A stretch of 64,000 bases of DNA from Magallana gigas (Eukaryota). The DNA is taken from assembly GCF_963853765.1 (NCBI RefSeq), contig NC_088858.1, positions 30,938,001 to 31,002,000 on the forward strand. Direction: 5' to 3'. The notes below the pieces were generated by a model that worked only from the letters and a program-made list of their open reading frames with translations, searched no databases and was not told the DNA's origin. The first letter of the stretch is position 1. Each line of letters opens with the position of its first letter. Positions 1 to 19,498 of the stretch are shown one piece after another. Made by a program: the position numbers and the translations under genes.

Positions 1-312
1 AAATCTACAAACGAAACATCATTAACATCTTCACAAGCATTTACAGATAACACTACACAAATCATTTACTTCGTAATCTTATCATAATCATTTATTCATA
101 TTTTAATGCAATATAAACTTCTATAAATCATATACAACATAAAAGAACTTGATTAAAGGTCTAATTATATATTATTAGAGTTGATGATTATCAACAAGTA
201 AGGCGGTTGGTGAGACTGTTCTTTGTCATTTAAATGTGACGTCATCAAAATGGTTATATATCAAACTTTGTATGCCCGAATCTCTTCTTGGAATGATACG
301 TTTGAATTTTTT

Positions 313-3300
313 CTATCCTTTTGGATACATAGTATCTACATATTCTGAAAACCAAAAATGGGAGTTAGCGAAAACATTCTGGAAATACTCAACCAAAAGC
401 AGTTATCAAGAAACAAGATTGCAACAAACCATATAGTTTAATATTTGTGTTTACGTTACAATGACTTTGATTTAAAAACATGAATGAATTTAACAGAATT
501 TTATGAACATATCAGTTGAAGGTATCATAAGTGATACTTTAATCATAATAAATATTTATGTGAAAATGTCAGTTCAGGGTACAATATATGGTCATTAATT
601 TAAATCAAAATAAATTTATTGGAATTACTAGTGTATGAAAAACCATCCGTTGATGTATTTTCTATGCACGCTGTTAGAAGTAGCGTAGATAATTACTTAC
701 AGTAACATTTTATACCAAAATGTAGAATTCCATGACATACTAAAAAAACCTTTTAGAATTTAACTCCAGTTACCGAACTATCTGACGATAGAATTGTAGC
801 TTCCTCATTTCAGGTNNNNNNNNNNNNNNNNNNNNNNNNNNNNNNNNNNNNNNNNNNNNNNNNNNNNNNNNNNNNNNNNNNNNNNNNNNNNNNNNNNNNN
901 NNNNNNNNNNNNNNNNNNNNNNNNNNNNNNNNNNNNNNNNNNNNNNNNNNNNNNNNNNNNNNNNNNNNNNNNNNNNNNNNNNNNNNNNNNNNNNNNNNNN
1001 NNNNNNNNNNNNNNNNNNNNNNTTGTTTTCTATAAGACTTTAAAATATCGCTTACCTTCGTAATCTATTTTTCCGTCCCCATTTTTATCTGCCTTTTCCA
1101 TCATTTCATCAACTTCCTTCTCTGTCAGTTTTTCTCCCATTTTTGTCAAAACTGATTGTAGCTCGGCTCTGGATATGAAACCATCCTTGTTCAGATCAAA
1201 CACTTGAAATGCTTTCTTTAATTCCATCTTCACCTCGTCCGGCTCTTTGTAAGACCGTTCCAGGAACGCCAGGAATTCATCAAAATCTATCATTCCATCT
1301 CCTGTATAGAGTATTTATGAATTTATCTATCTAAAATTAAATGCAATCATATTTTCCGTATTCTTTAAATTAAAAACTTTTTATAAACCTGTAACAACTC
1401 AACAATACAGCACAGCTAAATATTGAGGATTAAAAAAACCCGAACACTTGAATCCTTGATAACTTATAAAACAATTAAAAATAAATATAGGTAAGTTTAA
1501 AGTTGAAAACGCACCATTTTGGTCAATTTCGTTTATCATGTTTTGCACTTCTTTCATCGTTGGATTCAGACCAAGCATGCGCAATGCTGTACCCAGCTCT
1601 TGTGCACTTATTACCCCGTTTTTGTCCTTGTCGAATTCACGAAATACACTCTTAGCTTCAACGACCAAAGCTACAAAATACATGATTTGGAATCGAAGTG
1701 CAAATTAAAAAAAATTCATATAAACGTTATTACAATAAAGATGGTAACAGCGAAATTAAGAAAGAATAAGATAAGATACCTTTGGCATTTTTGGATGAAC
1801 AAATGTTTGACAAATCCATTGTCATACTTGATTCCTGGAAGTACAATAGCAATATGTATGATAAAAGTAAGTTTTAGATGTGTTCATATTTACAGATGAT
1901 ATTTTATGAGTATTAACGTACTGATTTCTTGAAAATATAATTCATTTCTTATATTATAGCATACTTGAGAATCATTTCTATATCATTTACTTTATCTAGA
2001 TTTCTGTGAGATCGTCTGAGGAAACCCAGGAATTCGTCAAACTTTATCAATCCATCTCCTTTAAAATGAATAAGAATTATCATTTTGAAAATGTTATCTA
2101 AAGATAAATTCGGTTCTTTTTGCCGGTAGTAAACCTTTTGAACAGTTGCAAATATTACCACAAAAGTCATTCGAAGTTTTGTTAGATGTGCATCATTGTT
2201 TGTATACTACTTTAATAATTTGACAAGGCTTTGCTTTTTTAAGCTGCAAACAAACTTAAATTTTGCAAGAAAAATTTGTTTGAGAGGTTTAATCATGAAC
2301 AAAAACATGTCATTACATGTAGTTATAATTGTTATCGTTCGGTAAATGAATAATCTCTCAACAAAACTATATATAATAGCGTAATACTATAACGAATTTC
2401 ATATAGCACATGAATTATTCCAACTATCCAGCAACATAAATGGCCATAACGCAAATGCATTATACATATGTATGTACACGTGCACTAGAATGATTATACT
2501 TTCTGACCTGCCAAATTAAAAAAAAAACTTCTGGGGTTTGAAAAACTACACGGTCAGGAAATATGAGGACTCCTAAACATAAATGTGCGTTATATGAATA
2601 TCCCTGTCTACTTTTTAGGCATATGGAACGCAAAATGAGGGAATATAATTACTTTGGATGTATGGAATTGCATTGTACAGTATTGAAGAAACAGCTCAAG
2701 ATAATTGACAACAAAATCTTTTTGGCAATAAAGTCACTATTGATCATATGATAATGAATGTGAAATTGATTTTATTGGTACATAGTGTATGTCGGCATTC
2801 ATATCCATTGGTGGATCCAGAGGGGGATTACGGGGGTTAGAACCCACCCCTTTCTCTGGGACAAATGAAATTTTTTTTTAAACTTAAAATTCTAACTGGA
2901 AGGCAATTTTTTTCCACTGCAATTTAAATACTATAATTATCCAACATAAATGCTTTAGAAATCGCTTACTAGTATTTAACAGATGTTCGTTGTCGTACAA
3001 CAGACGTAATTTATTCCTTAGAGACAACACCCTATCGATATTCTATTGAAGTAAAGTTATTAGTCAGGTTCCCGAGACTCCTCTGTTATTATTATTGGGG
3101 TCCCCAATACTAAAACAGAGGGTACTCGGGAACCTGACTATAAAGTAATCTTCTTCAGCACCTGGTGTTTATTTCTTTTAGTAAGCATGTGGAATTTTTT
3201 TTTAAAAATTACATAAAGCATGCAATATCGCTTAGGTATTTTCTTCTTCATTCCTAAAGAAAATCGATTGTACTTAATGAAACGCATGAAATGCATTTTA

Positions 3301-5926
3301 TTTTTCAAATGCTTAACTGAAATTCTGTGGCAAAAATATCTTAAGAAGGGTTAACTTGAGACTTATTGATTAAGACTACAAATTATCAAAATCCTTGCCA
3401 AAACCAAAATTTATATACCCACGGAAAATGTTAAAAAAGTCTAGGGGGTTCTTTACGAATAAAAGGTTAAGTTGGTATTGGACATCTCCATCTTATGACG
3501 TACTTCCTATGGAAATAATCAATAAAATCAAGTATAATTTTATCAAAGTTTTCTTTTTCAAAATTGCTACCTAACAGCGTAGTGCACTGAGTTTGAGTGT
3601 TAACTACGAATGTTAGTAATGAGTTCGAATCCCGTTGGGGCTTTTATGATTTTAACCTTTCCAGAAAATTTTAAAATATATTTTTTGGTCAAATATTGTA
3701 AAATTTGATCTTTTTTTAAACCGGTGAAAGTATTTGTCTATAAACTACTTTTATCCACATTGGTATCGACCCATACCACCTTAACTAGTGCTGAATTTTA
3801 CACGTTTTGATATTTATGGATTGGAACCCCCCCCCCCCTTTCCGATATTGCTGGATCCACCTCTGATATCTATATTTAAATGCACAAGAATCACTATTCT
3901 TTTAAGTTTGATCACAAAACTATAAGTATTTCAATGGAATAATCGGTAGTTTATATCATCGGATGTTAATGTAATGCTAAAGCACTAACGTATATGCAAT
4001 AAACAAGATAAATAAAATTCATCGCACAGTTTTGTTGATTTCCCAAATAGCAAGACATGAGTAAGCTTTACTTTTAGCAAGCGCATTGTATTTCCGATTT
4101 ATATTCTTACGCATAGGTAAAGAAAAGCGTAATTTGATTCATTATGTATGTAACTGTATGAATGTTCTACTTTCTGTGTTCAAGGCAAACGCATTTGAAT
4201 AACGTTTTAGTAATCTACATGTAATTAAAGACTTACATGAGGACGTCGTTGCATAGTAAATGTTATAGTGCAAGGCACAATGTGTGCGCAATTAGTAAAA
4301 TTTGCCGGAAGCCTTATATGGACACAGCTGTGTAAGACCGAAGCCGATTAAAAAATAGTATTTGCAATAAACGTTCCAGCATAGTATTCTTCCTTTTGAG
4401 TTAACCCTTTTAATTTCATTTCCAAACGCACCTTTTTTGTCAATTCCAATCATCATGGTTTGAACTTCCTCCCTCGTAGGACTCAGTCCAAGCAAACGCA
4501 GTGCTGTACCTAACTCCTGAACACTTATTTCTCCGTTTTTGTCTTGATCAATTTTATCAAAGGCACTTTTTGCTTCTATGATCAATGCTTCAAGAAACAA
4601 ATATTGTACAAAAATTAGCATTAGTCTGACTCAATATATCCTAAGACGAAATGGTGAAGTAAGAGCAGAAAATACCATTGGTTGATTGGGTTGAAACATA
4701 ATCTGACAGGGCCATCTTTGCTTTCGAATCCTAAAAGCACAATTGGTTTGTGTATGTTTTAGATTTATCATAACAAGCTGATTACACTTATTCAGGACGG
4801 TTAAATATCGACGACTTTACAAATTTATCGTTAATACGGTTTGAAGACTTTTTTGGCATTATAATAGTAAAAAACATTACTTTTTAATTTCAATTTGTAT
4901 TTTTTAAATAAAATGTTACTTCGCCTTTCTTCTTATAAGACCCTTTGAGAAATGCCAGAAATTCGTCATACTCTATCGTTCCATTTCCTTAAATAAATAC
5001 ATAAAAAAAATACTGTAGTATAAAAATCATATAACATGTGTGTATTGATAGTATTTAAAATTTCCACGTTGATTGTTATAATTGTTTATTCGTAATCTGC
5101 ACTACGTATAATTGGCGATTTTTCCCGAATTTAGCACAATGCCAATTTCATTACCATTTAGTATTAATGCTAAAGGAATGTTGGTCATATTAACTATTTG
5201 GTAAAAAAGTACTAGCCTTTGCATTTGTAAAAGAAATAAAGAATCTGAAAAAAAAAATTCGTGTTTAAAGATGCGTTTTATTGCCCAAAATGACGAAAAA
5301 ATGTTATCAGAGTTCTTATTTTGAGTCGTAAGAGCCGTTTTACGTTTTACTACCAGCTAGTTCAAGCTACCTGCGAGAGCAAAAATATTTGTGTGTTTTT
5401 ATTTATGAATAATATTCATTGCTAAAAAACATCGGAAGTCAAACGAGTACCCTGGCAATTGGATCATTTGCATGTTTTTCATTCATATGTTCATAAACTG
5501 ATAATAAATCCATTTATTGACATATATATATATATATCCTAAAGTATTGAAAGGGAAATGCGTACCTCAAAGTGTTACAAAATGACATGAAGATAATATT
5601 GACGAATTTATTCTACTTTTAAAACGCACCATTTTTGTCAATTTTCTTTATCACGTTTTGCAATTCCTTCATCGTTGGATTCAGACCAAGCATGCGCACT
5701 GCTGTACCCAACTCCTGGGCACTTATTTTTCCACTTTTATCTTTGTCAAATTCATCAAAAACATTCCTTGCTTCCAAATCCAAAGCTGCAAAAAAAAATG
5801 GATTATTTGGTATGTATCAAATAAAATAACAAAGCATCTTGTCTTTGGAATGGTAAAAGAAAACGTGAAAGAAGAAATACCGTTGGCTGATTGTGGTGAA
5901 AAAATGGCTGACAGATCCATCGCCAT
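313..5926 (-). CDS. Gene A2: 8-EF-hand calmodulin-like protein (345 aa), 10 coding exons
   Basis: Coding exons (minus): 5881-5926 (ATG, MAMDLSAIFSPQSAN), 5630-5785, 4920-4987, 4676-4730, 4432-4587, 1991-2058, 1780-1834, 1515-1670, 1056-1301, 313-344 (EYVDTMYPKG*). All junctions are GT-AG; total 1038 nt, in frame. Loops: [96 protein letters not shown]. An unseen exon in the N gap at 816-1022 cannot be excluded. Confidence 0.85.
816..1022. other. Assembly gap (N run) in the last intron of gene A2
   Basis: Run of N. Confidence 1.
3061..3140. mobile_element. 80-bp palindromic MITE with TA ends, nested in the 2806-3865 element
   Basis: TAGTCAGGTTCCCGAG...CTCGGGAACCTGACTA; outer 16 bp are a perfect inverted repeat; the stem is about 39 bp with a 1-nt centre. 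Confidence 0.8.
3577..3640 (+). repeat. Degenerate tRNA-like (SINE-head-like) segment
   Basis: A-box-like TAGTGCACTGAG and B-box GTTCGAATCC (3623-3632) at tRNA-like spacing; no intact cloverleaf. Confidence 0.35.
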
Positions 5927-6190
5927 TCTTGAATCCTGAAAGTGCAAGCAAGTAAATGTATCTTACATATCAACCGTAGCGTGGTGTTTACATATGTAGT
6001 AATTCTTATCTGCGTTGATTTAGTTTTGTCAAAAACGAAAGTTCATTTTTCAATTCGCCCCAAACATCATATAAACCCTAAGAGTTAAAATTTTCAGTTT
6101 AATTAACTCTTAATCAAAGATACATCATACATAAAATCCTTTAGTTTTACACATGCATGGAACTCGTAAATGTCGTAGTTTCATACTTAC

Positions 6191-6290
6191 CAGTACTACT
6201 GTGCACTCCGTATCAATTCCATGTCAATTTACATGAATCCCTTTAAGAACGGATAATTTCTGTCAATTTTTCCATGGTTCTATAAAACCA
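6191..6290 (-). promoter_or_regulatory. Putative non-coding first exon and core promoter of gene A2
   Basis: Strong donor CTG|GTAAGT at 6191/6190, giving a 255-nt intron to the acceptor at 5936. TATA-like TTTTATAGAA near 6285. There is an in-frame TGA and no in-frame ATG before the junction. The layout mirrors the 5'UTR donor of paralog A1 at 9780. Confidence 0.5.
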
Positions 6291-7882
6291 GGAACAAAAT
6301 TATGCTTTTCAAATCATTTAAAATCCTTTAAATTGCTTTGATATGCAATGTGTATTGTGCCCAAGGACGCTTAATCTCTCTCTATGTGTAACGTACATGT
6401 ATTCAATAGCAAAGATAAAGTAAAATTTAAAAAACTCTGCTTCAATATTGATCGTGTGAACAAGTGTTTTGTTCATATTAAAGGTTTTTGAAAGGTTTGC
6501 AAGCAATATGTATTCTATCCAAGCTCTTAAATGTTAGGCTTTACATTTTAAAACGTATTGATTTATAACAGTATCCAATTCAATATCTCCTAACAATAAG
6601 AACCGCTTATGTGCCAATATTCGACCGTTAGTGTCGGTGAATGCCGTGTGTACATCAATGAGCCAATCGACTTGAACAGACAGCGATCATTTGGAAGCCA
6701 GTAAAAGGTTTGGAATGAAAAAAATCAGTTCATGAGTTGGGTTTTTTTTGCTTCTTTGTTTTGGTTGTACCAACCATCTGAACTTTGAAAAATTCTTCAT
6801 TTGCTGATGCATTTGACAAAATATATCAAAATATATCTTAATATATATGATTTTATATGGCGTGTTATTTGATTTCATATGTATTAACTTAACCTCTCAT
6901 TGTATTGAGTTAAAAGAAATGTGTGTTTCTGGCTCTATTTATTCAAAACTAACCGTTACATATAAATGCATCTAAGATTTCGGTATAGTGCTACAAACAC
7001 TAAAACTCAAAAAGAAATTCTTTGTCTATAATGGAAAGTTATCTAGAAAAAATAAGGTGGAAAATATATGTATATGTATAAAAAAAAACTATTTTAATTT
7101 GAATATAAGTAATTCGTTGACCTGTATGAAATAGTTGGCTATATCATCTTTTTAATCACTTTGAATTATCTATGCTACGTAATATATAAATTATAATAAT
7201 ATGTATGATATATAATGTAATATGGTATGATTTAATAAGTAATATGTAATTTATATACAGATGCATTATACAAAATGGCCTCGGTGATGGTGGCGGGTTT
7301 TTTTTTCTTCGTATGGTTAAAGTCATATTGATTCAAGATTATTTAAAAAACAAAACAGACAATGATTGATATTTATATCCTTTTAATTCACAAGCATGTT
7401 TAGAAATGTATGTATAACAATTCAAAAACATTTCAAAAGCAATTTAAAAATTTAAAACAAAAATTCTAACAGTTCTTGGAGATGAGTTCTTAATTCATGA
7501 TAGTGTGGGTGAAGTTTATTAAAAGGTAACAATTGTTATACTAGTCCATATATACATGTACATACAAATATATTACAACGAGTGACATGCATGAAGTAAA
7601 TTGGAAGTGTAAAAAAAGATTTTAAGGAATCTGTTACACATTACTGCTATGCATTTAAAATTAAATTAATGTTTACTTTCATAATTATGACTTGATCCAA
7701 TTGAAAAACCATTTTGTCCCATCAATGCTTAAAACACCCAATGAATGGCCAGATGCAAACAAATTCACTAAATGATCAATCATTTAAAATATATGTAATG
7801 TTTTAAAAAATAGACCATATGATTAATCATTTTATAATCAACGAAGTTAAAATTAATTGCAATTTGCAGAATTGCTATCCAT

Positions 7883-18595: not shown

Positions 18596-19498
18596 ATGCA
18601 GTTACAGTCAAATAGAGTTTTTTGTTTTCTATTTTACATCATTCTCCAGTTTAAAAATTCTGCAGCGAGTGACCTTAGATGCGAGGACTTGTTAATGGGA
18701 CAATTCTATTGTAAAGATCCAGTGATAGACACGGAAACTCAAGTAAGGTGATTTTTGAAAGTGTGTATGTAATTGGGTTATAATAAGTTGTAACTTTGTA
18801 AATCCTTATTTTCATGTGATGATGAAATCTAAAATGAAAAAATAAAACACCTTGTATCTCAANNNNNNNNNNNNNNNNNNNNNNNNNNNNNNNNNNNNNN
18901 NNNNNNNNNNNNNNNNNNNNNNNNNNNNNNNNNNNNNNNNNNNNNNNNNNNNNNNNNNNNNNNNNNNNNNNNNNNNNNNNNNNNNNNNNNNNNNNNNNNN
19001 NNNNNNNNNNNNATATACTGTTACTATCATCAATATAAATTTTATTTTTGGCATTTTCAGGCAGAAATTAACTGTGATCCAGAGAAAAAGACCACACCAA
19101 CTGAATGTGTTGTCGCAGAAGGCATAACTTGCATTCCCCAAAATTCAAACACACTTTACACATTCAATGGAACAGAAGTTGGCTTCTACAAGGAAGCTCC
19201 TTGCAGATGGACGAATGGTTACAAGTTCGAGACAGCCTTACTCCTTTCAGTCTTTCTTGGGATGTTTGGGGTTGACAGATTCTACCTCGGGTATCCCGCA
19301 ATAGGACTTTTAAAGTTTTCTACTCTGGGTTTCTTTTTTCTTGGACAATTGATCGACATCCTCCTGATAGCCCTTCAGGTAGTGAAACCTTCGGATGGAT
19401 CCGAATATATCATGAACTATTTCGGAGTTGGTCTGATTCATATTCAGGCAAATAATGACACATATATTAAGCCTGACGAGTCGTGGAATATGTCATGA
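18596..19498 (+). CDS. TM2D1: TM2 domain-containing protein 1 (beta-amyloid-binding protein-like), 194 aa, 2 exons
   Basis: Exon 18596-18742 (MQLQSNRVFCFLFYIILQFKNSAASDLRCEDLLMGQFYCKDPVIDTETQ|gtaagg) and exon 19061-19498 (ttttcag|AEINC...LSVFLGMFGVDRFYLGYPAIGLLKFSTLGFFFLGQLIDILLIALQVVKPSDGSEYI...). Signal-peptide-like N-terminus, CEDL..GQ..CKDP motif and the TM2 DRFYLG motif all match TM2D1. The intron contains an N gap. Confidence 0.9.
18863..19012. other. Assembly gap (150 N) in the TM2D1 intron
   Basis: Run of N. Confidence 1.

Follow-up and report, generated by a model that had tools for sequence, protein, structure and literature searches.

An eight-EF-hand calmodulin-like gene of the oyster Magallana gigas with a threefold N-lobe exon module: structure, transcription and evidence for an origin by partial tandem duplication

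Structure of the gene

We analysed a 64,000-nucleotide (nt) stretch of the genome of the oyster Magallana gigas (RefSeq assembly GCF_963853765.1, contig NC_088858.1, positions 30,938,001 to 31,002,000 of the forward strand; hereafter the window), which contains a calmodulin-like gene with eight EF-hands. On the minus strand, between window positions 313 and 6191, ten coding exons preceded by an exon of the 5' untranslated region (5'UTR) form a single open reading frame (ORF) of 1038 nt within a spliced chain of 1047 nt; the ORF encodes 345 amino acids and begins with an ATG in exon 5935-5881. Exons were cut at AG/GT borders on the reverse complement of window 6600-1. Their lengths in the EF-hand chain are 55, 156 and 68 nt three times over, with the last 68-nt exon replaced by one of 246 nt, followed by a final exon of 32 nt. 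RNA was mapped to window 280-6270, using contigs of three runs from three studies (X5 and X7, both labelled M. gigas, and X1, an oyster metatranscriptome) and stranded poly(A) raw reads of a fourth run, X21. In the following, L1 to L3 denote the 55-nt exons, E1 and E2 the EF1 and EF2 exons, and a, b and c the three units. The features of the locus, in the order of transcription, are:

6191-6270, minus strand: 3' end of the non-coding first exon (5'UTR); donor after 6191, junction 6190->5934 present in X1 and X5 contigs and one raw read
5881-5935, minus strand: start-codon exon L1, 55 nt; leader of 9 nt, then ATG (MAMDLS...); junctions in RNA
5630-5785, minus strand: EF1 exon of unit 1 (E1a), 156 nt; codes for EF-hand 1 and the first half of EF-hand 2; Pfam EF-hand; junctions 5785->5881 and 4986->5629
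4920-4987, minus strand: truncated EF2 exon of unit 1 (E2a), 68 nt; apparently recruited donor GAA|GTAACA; junction 4919->4729 in three RNA runs
4676-4730, minus strand: linker exon L2, 55 nt; duplicate of the start-codon exon that is read in frame (DSKAKMALSDYVSTQSTN); RNA junctions
4432-4587, minus strand: EF1 exon of unit 2 (E1b), 156 nt; Pfam match; RNA junctions
2803-3865: inserted repeat element (about 1.06 kb) within the 2373-nt intron of unit 2; outside the coding chain
1991-2058, minus strand: truncated EF2 exon of unit 2 (E2b), 68 nt; donor AAA|GTAAAT; carries the degenerate loop 4; junction 1990->1833 in three RNA runs
1780-1834, minus strand: linker exon L3, 55 nt; second copy of the start-codon exon (ESSMTMDLSNICSSKNAK); RNA junctions
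1515-1670, minus strand: EF1 exon of unit 3 (E1c), 156 nt; Pfam match; RNA junctions
1056-1301, minus strand: complete EF2 exon, 246 nt; codes for EF-hand 6 (second half), EF-hand 7 and EF-hand 8 (most of it); Pfam match; RNA junctions
816-1022: assembly gap inside the last intron (345-1055); junction 1056->344 in RNA
693-739, minus strand: coding part of an alternative last exon (RefSeq isoform X3, tail VCHGILHFGIKCYCK); isoform protein matched to the window sequence, contigs of X7 cover 545-815
313-344, minus strand: last coding exon, 32 nt; EYVDTMYPKG, stop codon TAG at 313-315; the 3'UTR continues below 313

The 5'UTR exon contains an in-frame TGA 13 codons before its end. The introns behind all three 156-nt exons start with GTGCGTTT, and the introns between the units are short (189 nt from unit 1 to unit 2 and 156 nt from unit 2 to unit 3). 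An initial annotation, made from the sequence alone, had proposed these short introns, the common intron starts and the exon coordinates, lengths and AG/GT borders as well as an open chain of 1038 nt; our reading agrees with it throughout, except that the long exon ends at 1056 and not at 1055.

The main product keeps its reading frame despite the assembly gap, because the gap lies inside a last intron that is bridged by RNA: one spliced contig (X7) and one raw read (X21) join 1056 to 344. In addition, the RefSeq protein and the orthologues share the C-terminal tail (..KIDYE-EYVDTMYPKG), and in C. virginica, whose gene is free of gaps, the two last exons are likewise present with a split Glu codon.

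Transcription and isoforms

All ten predicted junctions are present in spliced contigs of X1, X5 and X7. Both inter-unit junctions, 4920->4730 and 1991->1834, on which the initial annotation had made its proposal depend, were found in spliced RNA contigs of all three studies, and a single 587-nt contig (X5, X7) spans E1a-E2a-L2-E1b-E2b-L3-E1c and thus crosses both of them. RNA depth was 30 to 260 in exon bins, against 0 to 3 in most bins of the introns. In X5 and X7, the contig covering the central part of the chain reaches 89-95% of the k-mer depth of the unit-3 contig, which indicates that most molecules carrying unit 3 also carry units 1 and 2. Among the RNA contigs and reads of the four runs, none joined the 5'UTR exon to L2 or L3. 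The raw reads of X21 have their first mate on the plus strand, as most stranded libraries give for RNA from the minus strand.

The spliced chain is identical to RefSeq XP_065943868.1, annotated as "uncharacterized protein isoform X2" [Magallana gigas]. This entry was reached by translating the third 156-nt exon (51 residues) and using it in a profile-free protein search, in which proteins with several matching stretches came out on top and which led via a 294-residue relative (P0004) to a cluster of 345-residue proteins. Together, the RNA junctions and the identity to the RefSeq model bear out the earlier proposal of a single gene with a single mRNA for eight EF-hands.

A retrocopy was considered as a source of the contigs and ruled out: the spliced inter-unit junctions (37-nt patterns, up to three mismatches) had no match anywhere in the 564-Mb genome, and the RNA contigs therefore do not derive from a processed copy. 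A DNA search of the genome with the locus returned only the locus itself and copies of the intronic repeat.

Two shorter products are on record. RefSeq isoform X3 (309 residues) skips E2a and L2 (123 nt, in frame) and ends with a different last exon (about 739-693). The same skip, with the normal tail, is found in a Logan contig protein (P0152, 304 residues). Skipping of E2a and L2 was not seen in the four RNA runs mapped, and it thus appears to be minor. With the last exon of isoform X3, EF-hand 8 ends in VCHGILHFGIKCYCK instead, and its loop would then lack the Glu at position 12.

EF-hands and lobes of the encoded protein

In Pfam searches with the whole protein, PF13499 (EF-hand pair) matched four stretches (E 1.3e-66) and PF00036 seven; with single exons, an EF-hand was found in each 156-nt exon and in the 246-nt exon. 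We regarded a 12-residue loop as canonical if it has D at position 1, D, N or S at positions 3 and 5, G at position 6, a hydrophobic residue at position 8 and E at position 12. D1, G6 and E12 are kept in all eight M. gigas loops, and the full canonical pattern is found in seven of the eight. The remaining one, loop 4 (residues 158-169, DKKGDGLIKFDE), has Lys at positions 3 and 9, and in a second oyster species N at position 1. By its profile matches as well as by its canonical loops the protein belongs to the EF-hand calmodulin/troponin C superfamily.

Each of the four lobes was typed by comparison with the N and C halves of five single-unit relatives. The first three scored higher against N halves (lobe 1, 126 vs 49 bits; lobe 2, 102 vs 44 bits; lobe 3, 132 vs 53 bits) and the fourth against C halves (122 vs 59 bits). 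The order is thus N-N-N-C, in agreement with the three N-lobes in series followed by a C-lobe that had been proposed earlier. Residues 203-342 align to the entire solved calmodulin. AlphaFold, run with an eight-row alignment, predicted eight helix-strand-helix units in four lobes (predicted local distance difference test, pLDDT, 60-84), and for residues 85-108 and 178-198 linkers with a pLDDT below 50 and one short helix each, which suggests four lobes joined by disordered linkers. Since no hydrophobic N-terminal stretch is present, the 345-residue protein is most simply taken to be cytosolic. Lobes 1 and 2 contain two Met each, compared with four to five in lobe 3 and the C-lobe, and unlike these have no net negative charge; this composition leans slightly towards a role unlike that of lobe 3 and the C-lobe.

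Gene structure, splicing, conservation between species and purifying selection can be regarded as shown, and we consider it highly probable that the locus is one gene with one mRNA for a 345-residue, four-lobe protein of the N-N-N-C type with seven canonical loops.

Origin of the repeated exon module

Self-alignment of 7000-1023 revealed three copies of one segment, which extends from about 113 nt upstream of the start-codon exon (in intron 1) through the EF1 exon to about nt 100 of the EF2 exon. Relics of the EF2 exon are found beyond both new donors, again to about nt 100. Between units, the exons are 68-82% identical with zero indels, and the introns about 50-56% identical with many indels. 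The segment E2a-short intron-L2-E1b (4999-4424) is colinear with E2b-short intron-L3-E1c (2072-1507), which indicates that the junction created in the first round was itself copied in the second duplication. The intron homology and the exon relics past the donors support the genomic duplication of an exon module that the initial annotation had suspected, and with self-alignments spanning exons and introns and with in-frame RNA junctions the gene falls among those enlarged by internal tandem exon duplication.

How the truncated exons may have become functional can be read from the donor sites. At nt 68, the parent 246-nt exon reads GAG|GTGAAG, where GTG encodes Val, and the truncated copies read GAA|GTAACA and AAA|GTAAAT; a pre-existing exonic GT thus appears to have been recruited as a donor and improved later. 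The C. virginica EF2 exon has GAA|ATT (Ile) at this position and hence no GT, whereas a neighbouring single-unit M. gigas paralogue (described below) has GAA|GTC, which suggests that the Val codon arose in the Magallana lineage before the duplications. The reading phase fits as well: 68 nt after a phase-1 start end in phase 0, and the start-codon exon can be read in phase 0 right from the first base, so that the leader and the old N-terminus are read as DSKAK-M.. and ESS-M....

The following scenario is well supported. A genomic segment that began about 113 nt before the start-codon exon and ended about 100 nt inside the EF2 exon was tandemly duplicated twice; the exonic GT of the Val codon at nt 68 became the 5' splice site of the truncated EF2 exon and has since been sharpened to GTAA; and the phase-0 splice to the next start-codon exon turned 9-15 nt of leader plus the old N-terminal peptide into a flexible linker of about 25 residues.

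Orthologues, age and selection

In a second oyster species, the full 345-residue chain was found in five runs of two SRA series (SRR14492766/75 and SRR21102251/52/56) with 91% identity at the protein and 91.7% at the DNA level, and the complete 1038-nt ORF is present on single transcript contigs. We rejected the possibility that this chain is a divergent M. gigas haplotype: the contigs of X1, X5 and X7 differ from the window at 1 to 10 sites per exon, compared with 18 in the second species. A third oyster species has a chain of 294 residues (SRR32622311), in which only the EF1 exon of unit 2 is absent. The ATG of L2 has been lost in both other species with the frame kept, which argues against L2 as an internal start.

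In a tree of N-lobe units, those at the same position in different species cluster together (support 94-100) and the C. virginica unit falls outside, so that the triplication should be older than the split of the three oyster species. At the matching array end C. virginica has single-unit genes only, and no extra N-lobe exons were found in the 10 kb upstream of its single-unit gene. Synonymous divergence (Ks) is 0.65-1.1 between units and is saturated between M. gigas and C. virginica; these values fit a triplication that is absent from C. virginica and predates the split of the three species.

The ratio of non-synonymous to synonymous divergence (Ka/Ks) is 0.2-0.45 between units. Between M. 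gigas and the second species it is 0.14 for lobe 1, 0.16 for lobe 2, 0.10 for lobe 3 and 0.03 for the C-lobe, at a Ks of 0.24-0.42 for units 1 and 2, and relaxed for the linker exons L2 and L3 (0.95 and 0.32, respectively). This pattern fits a translated protein in which every lobe is under selection and the linkers only need to be linkers.

If the proposed scenario is correct, the locus is an unusually clean and datable case of the one-step gain of a new domain architecture, in which a partial duplication ended inside an exon, a GT within a Val codon was turned into a splice donor, and a 5' leader with the N-terminus was turned into an inter-domain linker. The ancestral single-unit state is still present next door and in C. 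virginica.

Several observations weigh against the gene producing only the full eight-hand chain, or limit how far that picture carries. Raw-read support from X21 is thin, with one to two reads at seven junctions and none at either new junction, and contigs do not quantify isoforms. In-frame skipping isoforms occur, and the sole contig of the third species is without E1b, so that some products have fewer than eight EF-hands. In every species loop 4 is degenerate, and of the three units the second evolves fastest. The confidence of the AlphaFold model is moderate (mean pLDDT 64.8), and only its secondary structure and its pattern of lobes and linkers are trustworthy. Finally, translation of the full ORF is deduced from selection.

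Comparison with known EF-hand proteins

The oyster protein shares its fold with calmodulin and other four-EF-hand relatives, and their exon plan is common to both (a start-codon exon, a 156-nt EF1 exon, a 246-nt EF2 exon and a short last exon). It differs from the calmodulin type in having eight EF-hands in four lobes, where calmodulin has four in two, with two added N-type lobes on linkers of about 25 residues, which would derive from the former 5' leader and N-terminus, and with one degenerate loop. It is also not calmodulin proper, as the best calmodulin-type representatives are only about 53% identical to the EF1 exon. Of the four-EF-hand calmodulin plan (two lobes, a central helix, about 150 residues) only residues 203-342 are a match, and the protein as a whole falls outside it. 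Compared with the neighbouring paralogue, the C-lobe is 86% identical and the N-lobes are 57-70% identical.

Enlarged relatives of calmodulin are known. LpS1 of the sea urchin Lytechinus pictus has eight EF-hands, which arose from a duplicated four-EF-hand gene of the Spec type, and several bivalve multi-EF-hand proteins are labelled "calcium-binding protein LPS1-alpha-like" in RefSeq. Like the oyster protein, these are members of the troponin C/calmodulin superfamily that were enlarged to at least eight hands by internal duplication. One of them, C. virginica XP_022332306 (429 residues), is encoded on the same chromosome-scale record as the single-unit orthologue. The C. virginica LPS1-alpha-like protein types as N-C-N-C-N-C and thus repeats whole two-lobe units, whereas the oyster protein repeats the N-lobe only, with a border inside an exon. 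The hand count of the oyster protein fits an LpS1-type N-C-N-C plan and its N-N-N-C typing does not; LpS1 itself was set apart by description. Arabidopsis TCH3/CML12 is a calmodulin-like protein with six EF-hands. Here too, internal duplication has given a relative of calmodulin additional EF-hand pairs; again by description, it differs from the oyster protein in belonging to another kingdom, in its independent origin and in having six hands.

The same plan as in the oyster protein was found in two unrelated database proteins, one typing as N-N-N-C (P0051, 348 residues, from a EukProt transcriptome) and one as N-N-N-N-C (P0017, 411 residues, from ENA/Logan contigs, with 13 cluster members). 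Both are predicted proteins only; they are about 38% identical to the EF1 exon, have smaller typing margins and presumably represent independent inventions of N-lobe runs. Together with P0030 and P0044, they form a set of unrelated predicted proteins with three to four N-type lobes and with or without a final C-type lobe. The annotation of P0030 comes from a metagenome-assembled genome of Spirulina, where a repeat protein of the calmodulin type is surprising.

A literature search covering oyster calmodulin-like families, eight-EF-hand proteins, LpS1, the SRA runs and the RefSeq accession returned no description of the protein or its architecture; the one match to LPS1 dealt with a photosystem linker protein and had no bearing on it. 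The initial suggestion of an undescribed architecture thus holds as far as a describing paper is concerned; it has to be qualified in that the protein is modelled in RefSeq, although without a name, and that the same plan occurs in at least two unrelated database proteins. The RefSeq gene model and enlarged multi-EF-hand relatives of calmodulin are already known, and the N-N-N-C plan is not unique. The RefSeq label "uncharacterized protein" nevertheless hides a definable architecture that recurs in unrelated organisms.

Functional interpretation

In calmodulin, a canonical EF-hand pair binds two Ca2+ and opens a hydrophobic cleft. By analogy, the oyster protein would bind up to seven Ca2+, with lobe 2 probably binding one only, and its four lobes would tumble independently on flexible tethers. 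Such a seven-site, four-lobe protein would be either a multivalent Ca2+ sensor or a high-capacity buffer. Independent of this, a natural protein that carries a calmodulin N-lobe three times on tethers makes it possible to ask how lobe multiplicity relates to Ca2+ sensitivity, cooperativity and the cross-linking of targets.

Two explanations would deny the long chain its meaning. The locus could consist of three separate genes or fragments, two N-lobe-only pseudogenes next to an intact gene, or be an artefact of assembly; it does lie in a tandem array where partial copies are expected, and an assembly gap is located inside it. However, spliced contigs cross both inter-unit junctions in three studies, full 1038-nt ORFs are found on single contigs of another species, and the gap lies in an intron bridged by RNA. 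The RNA junctions refute this explanation. Alternatively, the mRNA could be real and its working product a calmodulin-like protein of 160 residues that comes from unit 3 through an internal start codon or promoter, with units 1 and 2 as a functionless leader. In support of this, each M. gigas linker exon contains an in-frame ATG, RNA depth rises somewhat towards the 3' end (in X1 from 30-35 upstream to 58-75 downstream), and the skipping isoforms suggest loose constraint on the upstream part. We nevertheless regard an internal start as very unlikely, in view of units 1 and 2 being open and free of indels with Ka/Ks values of 0.14-0.16 between species at a Ks of 0.24-0.42, the loss of the L2 ATG in both other species with preservation of the frame, the lack of any 5'UTR exon junction to L2 or L3 in the RNA, and the similar depth of the central and the unit-3 contigs (89-95%; X5, X7).

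If the complete four-lobe chain is translated, as we assume, it might still be a passive, high-capacity cytosolic Ca2+ buffer or store and not a target-binding sensor or scaffold. Additional Ca2+ sites would be the simplest gain from lobe duplication, the gene is part of a large and fast-expanding calmodulin-like array, and the few Met and the lack of net negative charge in lobes 1 and 2 point in the same direction. On the other hand, the helix positions that form the hydrophobic cleft in calmodulin, as judged from the alignment, are rich in Phe, Leu and Met and conserved in every lobe, and the strong constraint on the C-lobe (Ka/Ks 0.03) fits binding of a specific partner. We thus see a passive buffer as possible, if doubtful. 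The opposite and bolder view is that of beads on a string, with three N-lobes and a C-lobe acting as a multivalent, Ca2+-switched cross-linker or scaffold that holds one target per lobe. In such a scaffold reading, the N-N-N-C and N-N-N-N-C proteins of unrelated eukaryotes would make amplification of the N-lobe alone a recurrent solution, and the oyster protein would belong to an undescribed class of poly-N-lobe calcium sensors; we consider this proposal rather unlikely.

The surrounding calmodulin-like array

Calmodulin-like genes form a tandem array in this region, and the eight-EF-hand gene, a young paralogue among them, is located close to the end with the low coordinates. At least nine more such genes are present in the window, all on the minus strand. 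Their EF exons, arranged in tandem within window 8300-55000, are found at:

8.3-9.1 kb, minus strand: EF exons of a further calmodulin-like gene
12.2-13.7 kb, minus strand: the same
22.6-23.6 kb, minus strand: the same
27.0-27.6 kb, minus strand: the same
33.3-34.8 kb, minus strand: the same
37.5-38.2 kb, minus strand: the same
42.1-42.3 kb, minus strand: the same
46.3-47.6 kb, minus strand: the same
53.6-54.9 kb, minus strand: the same

The array continues for about 80 kb past the window, to about C6:31.08 Mb, and more calmodulin-like matches are located on the same chromosome at 8.5-9.0 Mb and at 39.2 Mb. A second assembly gap (18863-19012) lies within the array.

On the other side, at a distance of 1.2-2.1 kb outside window position 1, the minus strand encodes a single-unit paralogue with 160 residues and the tail DYDEYVDMMYPHGS (C6:30935944-30936822). 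Its tail explains a loose end at 1058 in the contigs of X7. This neighbour is the nearest relative of the eight-EF-hand gene and probably its parent. Of the two M. gigas genes, it is the one closer to C. virginica XP_022332297 ("neo-calmodulin-like") and to 160-residue proteins of Saccostrea echinata and Ostrea edulis, which are its orthologues. A contig of the second oyster species (SRR14492766, 1-3976) contains the full 345-residue ORF and, 2.2 kb further on the same strand, the complete spliced ORF of the neighbouring 159-residue paralogue; it resembles a read-through over two tandem genes, or a chimeric assembly.

The codon for residue 268 (1260-1258, minus strand) is GAA (Glu) in the reference, and Lys is encoded in all three RNA contig sets, in three of three raw reads, in the second species and in the paralogues, which indicates that the assembled individual has a derived or rare allele at this residue. 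The reference differs in the same manner at sites 1135, 1201, 4463 and 4526.

Scans for tRNAs and Rfam families in window 1-7000, which includes the repeat in the intron of unit 2, gave no match. This repeat (2803-3865) has inverted ends and an internal palindrome at about 3061-3240, and copies with 74-91% identity are found on chromosomes C3, C5, C8 and C10. Between 3480 and 3880, RNA depth reaches up to about 950 with many different loose ends, which points to an expressed repeat family.

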